A DNA stretch of 64,000 bases. It comes from Ylistrum balloti. Its lineage: Eukaryota. This document shows positions 1-64,000 of this stretch, piece by piece. The stretch spans positions 186,001 through 250,000 of the forward strand of contig NW_026782426.1 of assembly GCF_031769215.1 (NCBI RefSeq), written 5' to 3'. Positions within the stretch are counted from its first letter, which is position 1. Every line of letters begins with the position of its first letter. The position numbers were made by a program, and so were the translations under genes. The notes below the pieces were generated by a model. That model was not told the origin of the DNA. It was given only the letters and a program-made list of their open reading frames with translations, and searched no databases.

Positions 1-2
1 AG

Positions 3-160
3 GAACCAAAGGAGATTATCCGTACCATTGAGATTCCGCGCTATGTGGAGAAACCAGTTGTTTACAGGGAACCTGTGTACAGAGAACCCGTGTACAGAGA
101 ACCTGTGTACAGGGAAAGTTACAGAGAGCCTTCTGCTGTTTCTCGTCAAGATGTGGTCAT
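3..160 (+). CDS. Gene A (IgSF paralog), cytoplasmic-tail exon, 5' end outside or at window edge: EPKEIIRTIEIPRYVEKPVVYREPVYREPVYREPVYRESYREPSAVSRQDVV
   Basis: Open frame from nt 3, with a 15-nt coding repeat. Ends at canonical donor AT|GTAAGT (161), phase 2, compatible with the exon at 974. Confidence 0.8.
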
Positions 161-663
161 GTAAGTGACTGGTTTAGTATATAGTAAGCAAGACTTTTTG
201 TCTGGAGCTTAAGTGGTATAGTGACTGGGGTGACAGTCCTACTGTTGCAACAGCCAAGATTCTGAGTGATGCTCCTGTGGTATAATATAAGCACTAGTAG
301 ATTTAGTGTACAAACAGCAACATGAATAAGTCATTCTGTACAACTTATTTTCTTTCATTGTAAAATTTATGACAAACTTAAAGTAAGTGCTAAAAATGTC
401 ATTTTTTACATTCGAACCTGTACAGGTCAGCCACACAGACTATCTGGAGTATTTCTGCACAGAAAAAGTGAGATTCTGAACTGAATTTTACTTACAAAAG
501 ATTGTTTTGTACTTGTATACTAATGTGAATGACATTAAGTAATAGTATAATTGACACAGCAAACTTGAGGATAACTCTGCATTCACTAATTCCTACTACA
601 AATAATTTTACTCAGAAATCAACAAGGAGATAGGCACCATATGTTTGTGTAATGTTTTATTTA

Positions 664-845
664 GATTAGTGGTATATTTTGAATATAGAAGAGTTGTCTC
701 CCTTTAATTTATTTGCTACAGATTAGTGGTGTATGTTGAATATAGAAGAGTTATCTCCCTTTAAAGTATTAGATACAGATTAGTGGTGTATGTTGAATAT
801 AGAATAGTTATATACCTTAAAAGTACTAGCTTCAGATCAGTGGTG
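664..845. repeat. 57-bp intronic tandem repeat, about 3 copies
   Basis: GATTAGTGG recurs at 664, 721 and 778, with GATCAGTGG at 835. Confidence 0.8.
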
Positions 846-973
846 TAATTACCACATTCTAAACTGCTGATGATGAGTAGGGAAGTATTATCTCCCCTTT
901 AAAGTATTCTTTGTACAATGTTTTCAAGATCCAAATCAGAATATAAGAACCATGTTCTTTATTTTATATATAG

Positions 974-1051
974 TGCTGAGGAGAATTTCGACATCCTGAA
1001 GTATCAGACAATTCCTCCATCTGGCACCTCACTAGACGGAGGCACTGTAGG
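974..1051 (+). CDS. Gene A penultimate exon (78 nt, phase 2-2): (I)AEENFDILKYQTIPPSGTSLDGGTV(G)
   Basis: Acceptor TTTTATATATAG| at 973 and donor GG|GTAAGT at 1052. In frame with both neighbours. Resembles gene B exon 51764-51832 (PPTAVESEDGTI). Confidence 0.8.
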
Positions 1052-1373
1052 GTAAGTTTTCATAACCAATACAATGGAATAAAGTTTTATAACATTTTTG
1101 ATTTTTATGAAAACATCAATGTCAAAACTACAAGAGATTAATATACTGAATCTTTAAATGAGCGTTCATACAATTTGTTTTCTTTATTCTCTGAAATACT
1201 CTTCTCTCCATCATAAGTGTAAAATCTAAGTGATAAAGTTTAAGTCTTATCGCAAACAAAACAAAATATTGCTAAACAAATCATGTTTAAATCAGTTGCT
1301 ATTATATTTACTGTCTTCATCATCAAACCATACTTGCTCCTCACTAACACTCTATTCCTTGTTTATACAACAG

Positions 1374-60210: not shown

Positions 60211-61392
60211 AGCTGCATGTTGTTGTTGACAAACAAATGCCAGTAAAATTGAGTACTTTACATGGCACATGGCTTATCGCATCTTTAATAAGTGACGTTT
60301 ACTAAAATGTTCGTGAACATATAAAGAACTCCTATTCATTAGTGCTATACTTACTAATAAATAAACAGTTGCAATGCTAGTATGCAAGGAAATACAAATT
60401 AAGAATAACAAATTGATCCTCCGGATAGATCTATGACCATGAAACCCCAAAAAATACATAATTTTCCTGTTCCCAAACCAGGCAGGTTGATGGGTGAAGA
60501 CCAGATAACTAATCAGTTATACACATATATTGATGACTTTGCTTATTTTAGTTATTTACAAAAATATTATACATACATCTATTTTATTTTAATGTAGCAC
60601 ATTTAATATCTTTCGTGAATACTTTACATTATTGCATTATAATTGTGTATTACCAGGTGTATGGCATTTTCCATGTCAAATAACATTAATTAATTATAAT
60701 TATCTTTATTAATTATTACATGTTCATGTTTGTTATGTCATATTCACATCAAACCTAATTATTTTCAAGTTAGCTTAGATTTTAAGTTATATTTAAATGA
60801 CATTAACAATATCTGACCTCACTTTTGTATCTACGCAGTACCTGCTGATTGAGAGGGGATGGGGATGTTCATAATGCTATAAAACCATTTTCCCGGATTT
60901 TATTTTTTTCAATATTAAGTATGTGTACAGAGGATATGTATAACCTATTTTTAAAATGGTTTCAATTGGTGAACAAAGGTAATGCCATATTGATTTGATG
61001 TCTTAAACTTGAGATTTGCGGAATTCAAAATTAGCTACTTTTTCACCCTGAAGTTGACATGTGCGTAAAGTTATCACTCCAAACGGAACATTATTGATGT
61101 TGACGTAGAGAAACAATTATCTAAGAGTAAAATATTTTCCAAAATGTAGGAAAGATTTATCTTAAAGGCACTTAATGAAATATGTAGTGTGACGATGTGA
61201 ATTTCAGGCCCCTTGGGCCTTTTGCATATCACAACTGGAAAAAGAAAGACATATTCAGGTATGTTTTAAGGTACTCTAAAATACTGCAAAGTTTTAAAAA
61301 AATCGGAAAGTGGGTGGTTTTGGAAACCCCACCTTTAATGGAATTATATAGTAAATGTAATAATACATTTTAATGCACCAACTGAGTCTGAC

Positions 61393-61636
61393 TATAACTA
61401 TAAACTTTATTTATTTTACAACAATTGCGAAACAAGTTATGTCAGCTTATACTAATCACTCTTGTTGGCCCGGATGTAAGCGCGCGAGGGGTCTTATTGT
61501 GGGAGGAAACCGGAGTACCCGGGGAAGACCCACGTGATCGGGCAGGTGACCCTTATCTTTTCACGTCCGTGACAGGAGTTGAACCCCGGACAGCAAGGTG
61601 AAAGGCGAGTGCTCTACCACTGCGCCACCCGACCAC
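61393..61636 (-). mobile_element. tRNA-derived SINE with the GGGTACTCCGGTTTCCTCCCACA core motif (V/Meta-type SINE cores)
   Basis: Minus strand: A box TGGCGCAGTGG, B box GGTTCAACTCC, core GTGGGTCTTCCCCGGGTACTCCGGTTTCCTCCCACA, AT-rich tail. Absent from duplicate copy 1. Confidence 0.9.
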
Positions 61637-61700
61637 ACCATTCATGTTGACCATGGTGTATCAAACAATTGGTTGAGCGAAATGAAAGAACAACGTTTCA

Positions 61701-62504
61701 TTTATTTATTTAGGATTTATTTAGGATGCATGTCCATATCAATATTTAACAATACATAGCTGTGTTCATATTACTTCTGGTTGCAATGTTCAAATAAGGT
61801 GACTGTAGTAGCATTTATAACATGTTGGGACAAGCTGTTCGACAAATTTACAGTTCGTTGACTGAAGAAAATGATTTATAATGTCCAAAGGAGAATGTTT
61901 TTCATAAAGTTTTAGAGAATGCCCTCTTGTTGTGGTTGTGGTACTCATCTCAAATTTTCAGTACCTCTCTTATATATATTGTTAAAAACTTCGAAAGTGT
62001 TTATCATGTCTCCTCTCATCCTTCGATGTTCCAGAGTTGGAAGATCCAGTCTTTTCAAACGTTCTTCATATTATAAATTAATTCTTGAACCCGTGTAATA
62101 ATTTTGTAGCCCTCCTTTGATGTTTTTCAGTATTATGAATGTCATAGACTTGGTGTGGATTCCATACACTCAACGCATATTCAAACTGGGATAGTACCGG
62201 AGTTTTTAAAAACAATTTAAACATGGTCTCATCTAACTATACTAAAGTTTGTCGGATTAATTTCGCCTTTCTATTTGGCTTGTTAACAATTCCTTGTATG
62301 TGAGCCTGAAAGTTTAAATGAATGTCAATAATCACTCTGAGGTCTTTCCCATTGGTTTAAACTCCTAATGGTTTCTTTTCTCCTTCAACTCCACACATGA
62401 ACAAAATTCTCTTTTCCTTTGGTTTAAAAGATAAAATTTTACACTTATCTGGACAAAATTTCAACAGACATATATTCGCCCAAGTTTGAAACTTTTTCAA
62501 GTGG
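61701..62504 (-). mobile_element. 5'-truncated CR1-clade LINE fragment
   Basis: Minus strand reads FEYALSVWNPH..EKHQRRATK..YEERLKRLDLPTLEHRRMRGDMINTF, with a (TAAA)n-like tail. TTTATT lies at both ends; absent from duplicate copy 1. Confidence 0.85.
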
Positions 62505-62796
62505 TTTATTTTTCATACTTGGAAGAGAATGTGTCATTTAAAAATGTTTCTTCTGTTTTGAAAAATTTGAATTAATTGCCAAAAAATCAGGTCGCCGTTA
62601 AAAAATGGGAAAAGGAAAAAAACCCGTTATTTAGAGATCCTAGCATAGGATTTTAACAGCTATGGCTTAGGTAAGTGTATAACCTAGCTCCCCTTTGTGT
62701 GGAACAGTGGTGTAGTTACCGAGACCCACTTTTACACCTTTTACACAAATAGGCATTACCTTCATTGGTCACGCCACATTGAGCACACATACCAGT

Positions 62797-63116
62797 TTAA
62801 CAAGCCCAAAGCAATAGATTTTAAACAAAATCTGTTATTCTTAATTTTGCGCGTAGTCTTGTCCAGTCGTTCATCTAGTTATAGATATTTGTTAATGTTT
62901 GACGGAAATTAATTAGTAGATTATTATAATGCATAGGTAAAGATCGATCGTGTGCCTAATTAGTTTCCCTGTCGGTGCCTCATTATTTGCTTATAACTCA
63001 TCTCGATTTCTCTGTCACCGCGTGCGAGTGTTGTCGTCTGCGATTGTCGTAGTAACAAAATGGCGGACATTAAACGTTCGGTGGCTGAGACCGGTAACCA
63101 GGTGAAAATGACACAG
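62797..63116 (+). promoter_or_regulatory. Putative promoter and first leader exon, copy 2
   Basis: About 97% identical by eye to 13457-13775; AAAATGGCGG and CAG|GTAAGT are conserved. Confidence 0.55.
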
Positions 63117-64000
63117 GTAAGTCGTTTTTGAATGGAATATTTTTACTGAGCTATCACCAGAATATAGAGTTTAGGAAAGGTGTGATGTAATTTATAGACT
63201 AGATTGTCACGAAGGTATAAATTGACAGTTACTCGAGCGGTAGTGTGCTTCTTGGATATTTGACAAGTGTTCTCGTGTTATTTACTGTTACAACAGATAT
63301 AACGGTTTCCTATAGGTACTGAAGGATAAGGATTACTGTTGACAGGTGTGATGGATAATGACACGATTAGCAAATACAGGTATTATAAAACTCTTAATTA
63401 CCAAAAAAAGGTAAAAAGTAGAAATCAGTTATCTTCATAAAATAGTATTTTTGATAAAGATATTATATAAATCTTTATTGAGATTATCAATATATTATAG
63501 ATTTATTAATTTGCAAGCGTAATGAGAAGTTATTGTTCAGAAAATTGAATACAATATGTATCTTAAAAAACAGGATAAGAAAGTAAGCTTGATTGTTATT
63601 CTGTTTAAAAAGTCTAAATCCATTGAATTAAATAGTTTGTAGGTCAGGTTGACCTTAAAATGGAGGTCATGTCTAAAAGAACCCAAACAAGTATTGTATG
63701 ATCTAACTTAATGGTTTATTGTAGCACAGAGCTTTTAAATCAAGTAATTGTAATCTTTATAGAAGGAAATAACATTGTTGGAAGTGATTAAGAAAAAACA
63801 AACATTTTTGTTGTTTGGCACTTGAAATGAATGAAGCAGTTTAATCTGTATTTAATCCGTAAATGCTGTTAATATAAATTTAATAAAAAAAAACATTTAA
63901 ATAAGTCGTTAACCATAAAATATGAGATAATTTTTTGATACATTCCAAATTCTAATCCCCAAACGCACCAATTCTGACTCTTATTCGGGATACAGTTGAC

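Follow-up and report, generated by a model that had tools for sequence, protein, structure and literature searches.

Ig-domain type I membrane protein genes in a same-strand scallop cluster include a young duplicate pair with a diverged Ig2 exon

The stretch of Ylistrum balloti DNA analysed here (64,000 nucleotides; the window) covers part of a same-strand, head-to-tail scallop gene cluster of at least 205 kb, in which all 62 Ig exons detected between -49 kb and +156 kb relative to the window lie on the plus strand. Our data confirm that the cluster consists of tandem genes for Ig-domain type I membrane proteins, two of which, genes B and C, form a young duplicate pair. Each gene combines a row of Ig domains with a homologous stalk/transmembrane exon and tyrosine-bearing cytoplasmic exons, and A, B and C share a terminal tail that is highly charged and rich in Arg/Lys/Glu; the last exon of gene D was not found within the contig sequence examined. 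Ig content differs widely, with five domains in gene B, more than 20 in gene D and 31 Ig exons in gene A.

The window opens with the 3' end of gene A. Its first cytoplasmic exon (1-160, plus strand), the first ~50 bp of which precede the window, encodes a juxtamembrane KKEKKK stretch and PVYRE repeats, has a phase 2 GTAAGT donor and is 85% identical to residues 846-918 of A's ortholog P0042. The following cytoplasmic exon (974-1051, plus strand; phase 2 to 2) is 90% identical to residues 919-939 of the same protein. It contains the sequence L-K-Y-Q-T-I, which fits the ITIM consensus (I/V/L/S)xYxx(I/V/L) and is kept in the ortholog; by eye, this consensus is absent from the gene B tyrosines YVEN, YGIVY, SVYDDS, HTYDEL and GYISE. 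The last exon (1374-1692, plus strand), whose acceptor (~1374) was placed from the alignment with the ortholog, encodes an Arg/Glu-rich tail and carries the stop codon at 1690-1692, in agreement with the original prediction, which had this paralog end at 1692. That A and B have intron phases and tail composition in common at low identity was likewise borne out: the phases are 1>2, 2>2 and 2>end, and identity is 46-64% in the exons for the last Ig domain, the transmembrane segment, the first cytoplasmic part and the tail. The assignment of genes A and D as old paralogs of gene B is supported.

Gene B comprises 13 coding exons on the plus strand that join into 2262 nt (753 aa), with AG/GT borders throughout and closed phases. 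Searches with the gene B model used its individual exons, with the public ortholog P0006 as a full-length proxy. The ATG at 31560 and the stop codon at 52790-52792 match the coding limits proposed before; the proposed length of 716 residues did not hold, and the 37 additional residues correspond in size to the exon at 51235-51345. The signal-peptide exon (31507-31632; acceptor 31506/31507) ends in phase 1; this short exon gave no tblastn match to the orthologs, and its start Met aligns by eye with that of P0006. Ig1 is split between two half-exons, the first (34076-34230) with 57% identity to P0006 residues 26-78 and the second (35168-35306) unique in the genome, its last ~30 bp alone being left in gene C. 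They are followed by the exons for Ig2 (37815-38114), a CD80-like C2-set domain and the site of the B/C divergence island described below, for Ig3 (38498-38779), an I-set domain, and for Ig4 (40244-40498), and by two half-exons for Ig5 (42429-42589 and 48377-48488). In the intron ahead of 48377, the minus strand carries a tyrosine-recombinase-like element of 4 kb, and the window as a whole is rich in transposons and minisatellites. The stalk and transmembrane segment share an exon (49083-49208) that runs from DTGASTGDTG to CCICSG. Three cytoplasmic exons follow: the first (50219-50354) encodes KKEKKKK and PAYVENY, the second (51235-51345) has 37 codons reading from FNPSIISRKHVDVDMES to YGIVYG, and the third (51764-51832) encodes STTSRFVLRAPPTAVESEDGTI. 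The last exon (52450-52792) specifies the Arg/Lys/Glu-rich tail, which is 59% charged.

Direct reading of the gene B product gives the layout of a type I member of the IgSF, with an N-terminal signal peptide (MEFSTQCLLSAVLSLLIISTVNSQ), five Ig domains, a single transmembrane segment (GVIVAIVLGILLILFIIILIIVCCIC) followed by KKEKKKK, and the charged tail. The Ig3 and Ig4 exons passed the Pfam cut-offs for Ig_3, I-set and Ig_2, as did the Ig2 exon for C2-set_2; the Ig1 and Ig5 half-exons gave Ig matches below threshold, and the full ortholog shows five Ig stretches by Pfam. No match to the cytoplasmic tail was obtained in Pfam, among solved structures or in the protein atlas.

The original prediction could not assign the locus to a named gene. 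Predicted scallop orthologs of gene B can now be assigned, and their automatic names do not fit. They are XP_021370012.1 from Mizuhopecten yessoensis ("hemicentin-1-like", 769 aa) and XP_069115360.1 from Argopecten irradians ("CEACAM5-like", 758 aa). The match of gene B to XP_021370012 runs through the exons one after another, tail included, with 47-81% identity per exon. By tblastn, P0006 matches 10 of the 13 coding exons in order, to which P0173 adds the transmembrane and first cytoplasmic exons, and in a word search with the tail only XP_021370012 and one Argopecten protein had the same tail. Both orthologs resemble B in their five Ig domains, DTGASTGDTG stalk, CCICSG membrane border and charged tail, as well as in the cytoplasmic blocks FNPSI.SRKHVDVDM, STTSRF..RAPP.AVESE.GTI, SVYDDS, HHKRE.GEGEESPPRKER and EHGYIS.GSP; B and C end 8 codons before the M. 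yessoensis protein and 13 residues before the A. irradians protein. One such protein was found in each of these two species in our searches, whereas Y. balloti has two tandem genes, the second without Ig1. The orthologs of A (P0042), D (P0005) and B lie on the same 425-kb Mizuhopecten scaffold with adjacent accession numbers. A literature search returned no study or function of these genes or their orthologs. This is an ordinary kind of gene family with relatives already predicted in other scallops; the locus offers a clean, fully mapped example in which old paralogs with a common transmembrane/tail module keep their position across scallops, and to which a recent duplicate without its outer domain and dead fragments elsewhere are added.

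Neither automatic name gives the right family. In hemicentins, which are secreted proteins of the matrix, a von Willebrand A domain stands at the N-terminus and EGF and fibulin-type modules at the C-terminus. The cluster genes are like them in their repeated I-set and C2 Ig domains (31 in gene A), but the B exons and the orthologs of A, B and D yield Ig families only in Pfam, and the Ig domains lead into a transmembrane segment and a cytoplasmic tail. CEACAM proteins begin with a V-set domain that lacks the canonical disulfide and continue with C2 A/B domains. The first domain of B, in contrast, matches C2-set families, has both cysteines (TCTS ... FYCRA) and gave no N-terminal V-set match. 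Nephrin/SYG-2 and Kirrel/SYG-1 share with B the type I layout and rows of Ig domains with a CD80-like C2-set, and the Ig count of Kirrel is likewise five. The alignment of SYG-2 with Ig1-Ig3 of the ortholog has E = 2e-18, and CEA, Dscam, titin and contactin align equally well or better; unlike nephrin, gene B is without a fibronectin III (FN3) domain, and its tail aligned to no solved chain.

Ig exons beyond the second leader module at 63 kb, which the original prediction of an array called for, were sought in the next 100 kb of the contig, and a full second copy of B was found. This copy, gene C, lies at window-equivalent 72.5-84.7 kb and consists of the signal-peptide exon, Ig2-Ig5 and the transmembrane, cytoplasmic and tail exons, with 76-100% protein identity to B. 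The two genes are collinear through exons and introns (13172-53600 against 61635-85470; block identities 78-98%), which implies that the duplication is recent (overall dS ~0.1), and the duplicated unit starts ~0.5 kb upstream of a CpG-rich module. The predicted mixture of old and recent duplications thus corresponds to the old paralogs A and D and the young pair B/C. Features of birth-and-death evolution, also predicted, were found as well: gene C has lost Ig1 through a 2.7-kb deletion, and elsewhere in the genome there are four partial, dead Ig2-Ig3 copies that have lost a core cysteine. Gene C is thus a lineage-specific tandem duplicate of B's entire 40-kb unit, and the deletion of its first Ig domain followed the duplication. 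Transposons and minisatellites enlarged the B introns. Most of B/C has been held at 93-98% identity, probably by gene conversion. Consistent with concerted evolution, the comparison yields one collinear path with tracts well above background identity (78% to 98%).

We asked how far gene C could be a decaying copy and not a working four-Ig variant, which we regard as rather unlikely. The domain that it has lost is the membrane-distal one, present in both orthologs, and the four dispersed family copies are fragments that have lost a core cysteine, which speaks for decay. However, all 11 remaining coding exons of gene C are open and their splice sites intact; because the signal-peptide exon and Ig2 are both in phase 1, the frame stays open across the loss of Ig1. 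The dN/dS of B versus C outside Ig2 (0.41) also argues for a working variant.

A duplicate pair of this kind might also result from two haplotypes of one locus mis-assembled in tandem, and bivalve genomes are highly heterozygous. In a DNA run from another individual, contigs tile the module region, exon and non-exon sequence alike, with depth approximately doubled over the core; collapsed alleles would likewise double the depth at a common core relative to copy-specific flanks. Nevertheless, the divergence is far above allelic (dS ~0.1-0.2, blocks down to 78%, many kb-scale indels and a missing domain), 8 kb of unique spacer with a transposase ORF separates the copies, and the unduplicated upstream region is covered at the single depth that is also seen in the B-specific parts, which makes mis-assembly very improbable.

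The CpG-rich module occurs once ahead of gene B and once ahead of gene C. The gene B copy (13395-14166, plus strand) has a core at 13480-13775 with a TATA-like TTATTATAAT at 13580, a 19-codon open frame from the ATG at 13719 and a CAG/GTAAGT donor at 13776; the gene C copy and the start of its first intron occupy 62737-64000 (plus strand), with the ATG at 63060 and the donor at 63117. The second leader copy was therefore where it had been predicted, with the ATGs offset by 49,341. This distance had been put forward as the spacing of the cluster; the tandem arrangement stands, but 49.3 kb is a single leader-to-leader interval and not periodic, other homologous points of B and C being 30-46 kb apart. 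The copies are 97.0% identical over 13480-13775, 97.5% over the next 285 bp and 93.8% over the whole 778-bp match. CpG o/e reaches 1.66 in the core, compared with 0.38 for the entire window and 0.21 for the signal-peptide exon. Rfam and ARAGORN found no known RNA or tRNA-derived element over the whole window, and an identity of the module as such an element was rejected on this basis.

With only two copies in the 648-Mb assembly, the module is not a dispersed repeat. That it is a transposable element inserted twice, as a window full of transposons and minisatellites might suggest, is extremely unlikely given this copy number, the collinear homologous flanks in which both copies sit and a lack of any transposase ORF seen near either.

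We propose instead that the module would act as promoter and as a non-coding first exon that contains a short upstream ORF. Splicing would join 13775 to the acceptor at 31507, which lies shortly ahead of the signal-peptide ATG, and the upstream ORF would stop 7 codons into that exon. We infer this leader-to-gene splice from the letters of the DNA: the CAG/GTAAGT donor and a good acceptor ahead of the signal-peptide ATG are kept in both copies, and the module and the signal-peptide exon are ~3 kb apart once copy-specific insertions are removed. Both orthologs have three transcript accessions for one protein, as is expected with alternative 5' UTRs. Because the module was copied along with the whole unit, its position upstream of both genes does not count as independent evidence, and its 97% identity may reflect conversion, as one tract among several, and not constraint.

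In another scenario, the modules at 13.7 kb and 63.06 kb would be a separate transcription unit, such as a small gene or the promoter of a non-coding RNA, or a carried-along regulatory element, and the Ig genes would start at the signal-peptide exon. The frame of the module ATG encodes no signal peptide and stops after 25 codons if spliced to 31507, which is compatible with this scenario, as is the co-occurrence of module and gene, expected anyway from the duplication of the whole unit. We consider it possible but not probable, since the interval between module and signal-peptide exon showed no further conserved ORF and no exon detectable by Pfam, Rfam reports no known RNA, and the ancestral distance of ~3 kb is that of a typical first intron. 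Moreover, a strong acceptor lies 53 nt ahead of the signal-peptide ATG in both copies, and the signal-peptide exon is without a CpG-rich patch of its own.

The binding-type Ig2 domain has diverged unusually fast between B and C. Its exon shows 44 differences in 297 positions (15%), compared with 15 in 554 (3%) in the flanking introns (p = 1e-10), and the edges of this island are sharp and coincide with the exon borders and splice sites. The excess is also seen against the dispersed copies, which were examined as 4-kb loci, and is absent among the dead copies themselves. A third paralog as the source of Ig2 by gene conversion was rejected as an explanation: the assembly contains no closer donor, and the Ig2 of C is 72-76% identical to every other copy. 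The dN/dS check suggested with the original prediction was run on B versus C and gave 0.51 overall and 0.74 for Ig2, a value not greater than 1. Synonymous divergence in Ig2 is raised as well (0.205 versus 0.028 in introns), so that the island is not ascribable to positive selection on amino acids alone. The 15% difference would fit selection for differing binding specificities in a membrane-distal recognition domain. We speculate that Ig2 may be an island protected by selection on specificities or by exon-targeted diversification, in a scallop-specific family of diversifying recognition receptors whose conserved NLS-like charged tail could signal; on present sequence comparisons we hold this to be unlikely. 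A sharp Ig2 island in otherwise homogenised duplicates provides a testable pointer to the site of ligand binding and selection. The proposal as a whole, namely a cluster of old and young paralogs, a module that serves as promoter and first exon, a gene C duplicated without Ig1 and an Ig2 island, appears likely to us.

Bivalves have no antibodies and show large expansions of Ig-domain surface proteins. The scallop cluster resembles the KIR, LILR and CEACAM clusters in its same-strand tandem paralogs of mixed age, variation in domain number and dead fragments; gene A, like members of those clusters, has a motif of ITIM consensus, and membrane-distal domains change faster. An immune role of the scallop cluster is putative, and demonstrated homology is limited to the Ig fold. 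The charged Arg/Lys/Glu tail is not known to have a counterpart in the vertebrate Ig receptor clusters. The value of the locus lies mainly in a lead for work on scallop immunity or cell recognition and is otherwise that of ordinary comparative genomics. Unlike fast-turnover immune receptors, the scallop orthologs are one-to-one across genera.

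The window (C569:186001-250000 in an assembly of 648 Mb, C569 being contig NW_026782426.1) is AT-rich, CpG-depleted and without gaps (G+C 35%, CpG observed/expected 0.38), and its 64 kb are crowded with minisatellites and transposon remnants. We fetched 100 kb on each side (264 kb in all), and a local profile search located 62 Ig exons between -49 kb and +156 kb, all of them on the + strand. They mark a cluster of four Ig-domain membrane-protein genes, A to D. The nearest known proteins come from the scallops Mizuhopecten yessoensis and Argopecten irradians, at ~55-65% identity. 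The original observation on this stretch is confirmed: the tail of gene A ends with a stop at 1690-1692, and gene B extends from an ATG at 31560 to a stop at 52790-52792. Its interpretation is supported, with caveats on the spacing, the predicted leader link, the putative immune role and the naming of the gene. ARAGORN called no tRNA across the window. In the A-B and B-C spacers lie two remnants resembling PIF/Harbinger-type transposases (6454-7256 and 58139-60066, + strand), one with a DDE_Tnp_4 match above the Pfam cut-off and the other with a sub-threshold HTH_Tnp_4 match in a long broken ORF. Short repeats are also dispersed within and between the genes (22994-23391 and 30755-30909, an inverted pair; 19965-20267 and 55838-56313).

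The exons of gene B were placed using open frames, splice consensus, conservation in gene C and tblastn of the Mizuhopecten protein; the model was searched exon by exon, with the public Mizuhopecten ortholog (XP_021370012) as a full-length proxy. Gene B has 13 coding exons with AG/GT borders throughout and phases that close, giving 2262 nt or 753 aa. In order, these encode the signal peptide, Ig1 (2 exons), Ig2 (a CD80-like C2-set domain), Ig3, Ig4, Ig5 (2 exons), the stalk and transmembrane segment, three cytoplasmic exons and a last exon in which Arg, Lys, Glu and Asp make up 59% of residues. The protein originally predicted, of 716 aa, had both CDS ends right but was 37 aa too short; the exon at 51235-51345 encodes exactly 37 aa, the same as the shortfall, and may be the part missing from that model.

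Three tandem repeats in the introns of B (34234-34799, 38093-38208 and 50490-50972) begin at or near the 3' end of an exon, namely a 44-bp minisatellite after Ig1a, a short duplication over the end of Ig2 and a 91-bp minisatellite after cytoplasmic exon 1. They copy the adjoining exon end including its GT donor, and the expansions are absent from gene C. Also absent from C are a ~4-kb minus-strand element in the Ig5a/Ig5b intron (43544-47624), with a weak tyrosine-recombinase (phage-integrase-like) match, and a G+C-richer insertion in the first intron (25770-27050), whose 177-codon open frame falls into no recognised family.

One of two findings named in advance as refuting the receptor array was an absence of Ig exons beyond the second leader copy at 63 kb. 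Such exons do follow it, as gene C at window-equivalent 72.5-84.7 kb, and on this point the prediction therefore holds. Gene C is a lineage-specific duplicate of B. The DNA is collinear over exons and introns alike (B 13172-53600, C 61635-85470; block identity 78% to 98%), and the unit of C is shorter because of the extra minisatellites and transposons in B. Protein identity between the two is 100% in the signal peptide, 76% in Ig2, 97% in Ig3, 96% in Ig4, 95% in the transmembrane segment and 88% in the tail. A deletion in C, of the equivalent of B 32539-35273, has cost it the whole first half-exon of Ig1 and the greater part of its second half-exon. Since the signal-peptide exon and the Ig2 exon are both phase 1, a four-Ig protein can still be encoded, and every remaining exon of C is open. 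For the B-C pair, overall dN/dS is 0.51, falling to 0.41 when Ig2 is left out. The proposed spacing of 49.3 kb is true as a single leader-to-leader interval; since equivalent points elsewhere in B and C are separated by 30-46 kb, it does not recur as a period. An intron of C carries a ~1.9-kb insertion absent from B (locus L004, window-equivalent 80.65-82.55 kb), and nowhere in the 264 kb are there patches richer in CpG than those on its two sides (observed/expected up to 2.5); a young element bounded by terminal repeats is the probable explanation.

The leader module was compared between its two copies, the only ones in the whole assembly. Self-comparison aligned 13395-14166 with 62737-63511 (93.8% over 778 bp) and, next to this, 14383-14859 with 63519-64000 (83%). 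The module ATGs at 13719 and 63060 are offset by 49,341, exactly as claimed, and the reported identity of about 97% was recovered in the core (97.0% over 13480-13775) and in the next 285 bp (97.5%). A genomic DNA run from another individual tiles the region, with depth approximately doubled over the module core, as expected from two copies. The ATG is followed by 19 codons and then by a perfect CAG/GTAAGT donor, with a TATA-like element ~195 bp upstream of this donor. CpG observed/expected reaches 1.66 in the core, which is among the most CpG-rich patches of the 264 kb, versus 0.21 around the signal-peptide exon. The latter has a strong acceptor 53 nt upstream of its ATG in both B and C and, with copy-specific insertions discounted, has the module ~3 kb upstream. 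Each of the two orthologs has a single protein but three transcript accessions, a pattern that would be consistent with alternative 5' UTRs. These features support a promoter with a first exon, and a splice from 13775 to 31507 is reasonably likely; the module ATG would then start a 25-codon upstream ORF.

The part that we consider worth pursuing is an island of divergence at Ig2. Of the 297 in-frame positions in this exon, 44 are different between B and C, versus 15 of 554 in its flanking introns (Fisher p = 1e-10), and in 50-bp bins the differences climb and drop at the exon borders. Divergence in the exon is above that of the introns (0.028) at synonymous (0.205) and non-synonymous (0.152) sites alike. 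The adjoining Ig3 exon is no more or less diverged than its own introns, and identity in the unit's other non-coding blocks is 78-86%, similar to the synonymous divergence of Ig2. A closer donor for the Ig2 of either B or C was not found in the assembly. In our reading, the duplication would predate what the 97% tracts suggest; gene conversion would have homogenised much of the unit, and the module's 97% identity may be one conversion tract among several. The Ig2 exon would have escaped, most simply if copies with a homogenised Ig2 were selected against. As it concerns a single exon pair, escape of Ig2 by selection should be taken as a lead rather than a result.

Four more copies of a ~1.4-kb piece comprising Ig2, the intron, Ig3 and a 55-bp minisatellite were found on contigs C1236 (twice), C206 and C1020. 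Their identity is 85-91% with B and 92-98% with one another, and some may be haplotype duplicates. No B-like signal-peptide, Ig1, Ig4, transmembrane or tail exons were present at these four sites; the first core cysteine of Ig3 is replaced by Trp, and one copy has an indel. Together with the domain loss in C, these dead fragments fit the birth-and-death evolution originally proposed.

In gene A, loci L011-L015 (window-equivalent -49.3 to -1.8 kb) contain 31 Ig exons, 24 of them of one ~98-aa phase-1 type with four neighbours 77-89% alike. The 3' part of the gene, with its transmembrane, cytoplasmic and tail exons, is homologous to that of B, with shared phases, as first observed, and 46-64% identity. 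The A ortholog, Mizuhopecten OWF42447, has a locus tag adjoining that of the B ortholog (OWF42446); its model contains nine Ig domains only, and the 31 exons of A reflect either an expansion in this lineage or a set of exons used as alternatives. Isoforms of Mytilus relatives differ by steps of ~100 aa. Gene D, downstream, has its transmembrane exon in common with A and B, and its ortholog (XP_021370007, 2946 aa) lies on the same 425-kb Mizuhopecten scaffold. This synteny and the common exons identify A, B and D as old paralogs, so that the array does mix old duplications with a recent, lineage-specific one (C). Right behind the D cytoplasmic exon lies a minisatellite of at least ~5 kb (L010, window-equivalent 159.1-164 kb) that reads Ser/Thr/Gln/His-rich in several frames.

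The statement that the genes cannot be assigned to a named gene needs qualification: named, though uncharacterised, predicted orthologs exist, and 'hemicentin-1-like' and 'CEACAM5-like' are automatic names. Pfam detected Ig families and the membrane span alone, with no von Willebrand A, EGF or fibulin modules and no N-terminal V-set domain. Among solved structures, the matches were generic Ig ones (CEA, Dscam, titin, contactins and SYG-2). The cytoplasmic tail had no match in Pfam or the protein atlas, and a word search returned two scallop orthologs only. Between genera it is as conserved as the ectodomain (60-69% identity), which argues for a real, if putative, signalling or anchoring role.

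Relatives of the Ig2 domain outside the window include the mussel (Mytilus) Ig-repeat proteins P0001, P0003 and P0012. The C-termini of P0001 and P0003 are near-identical by eye; at the end of P0012 lies a neurotransmitter-gated ion-channel ligand-binding domain (Pfam E = 3e-21), an acetylcholine-binding-protein-like fusion.
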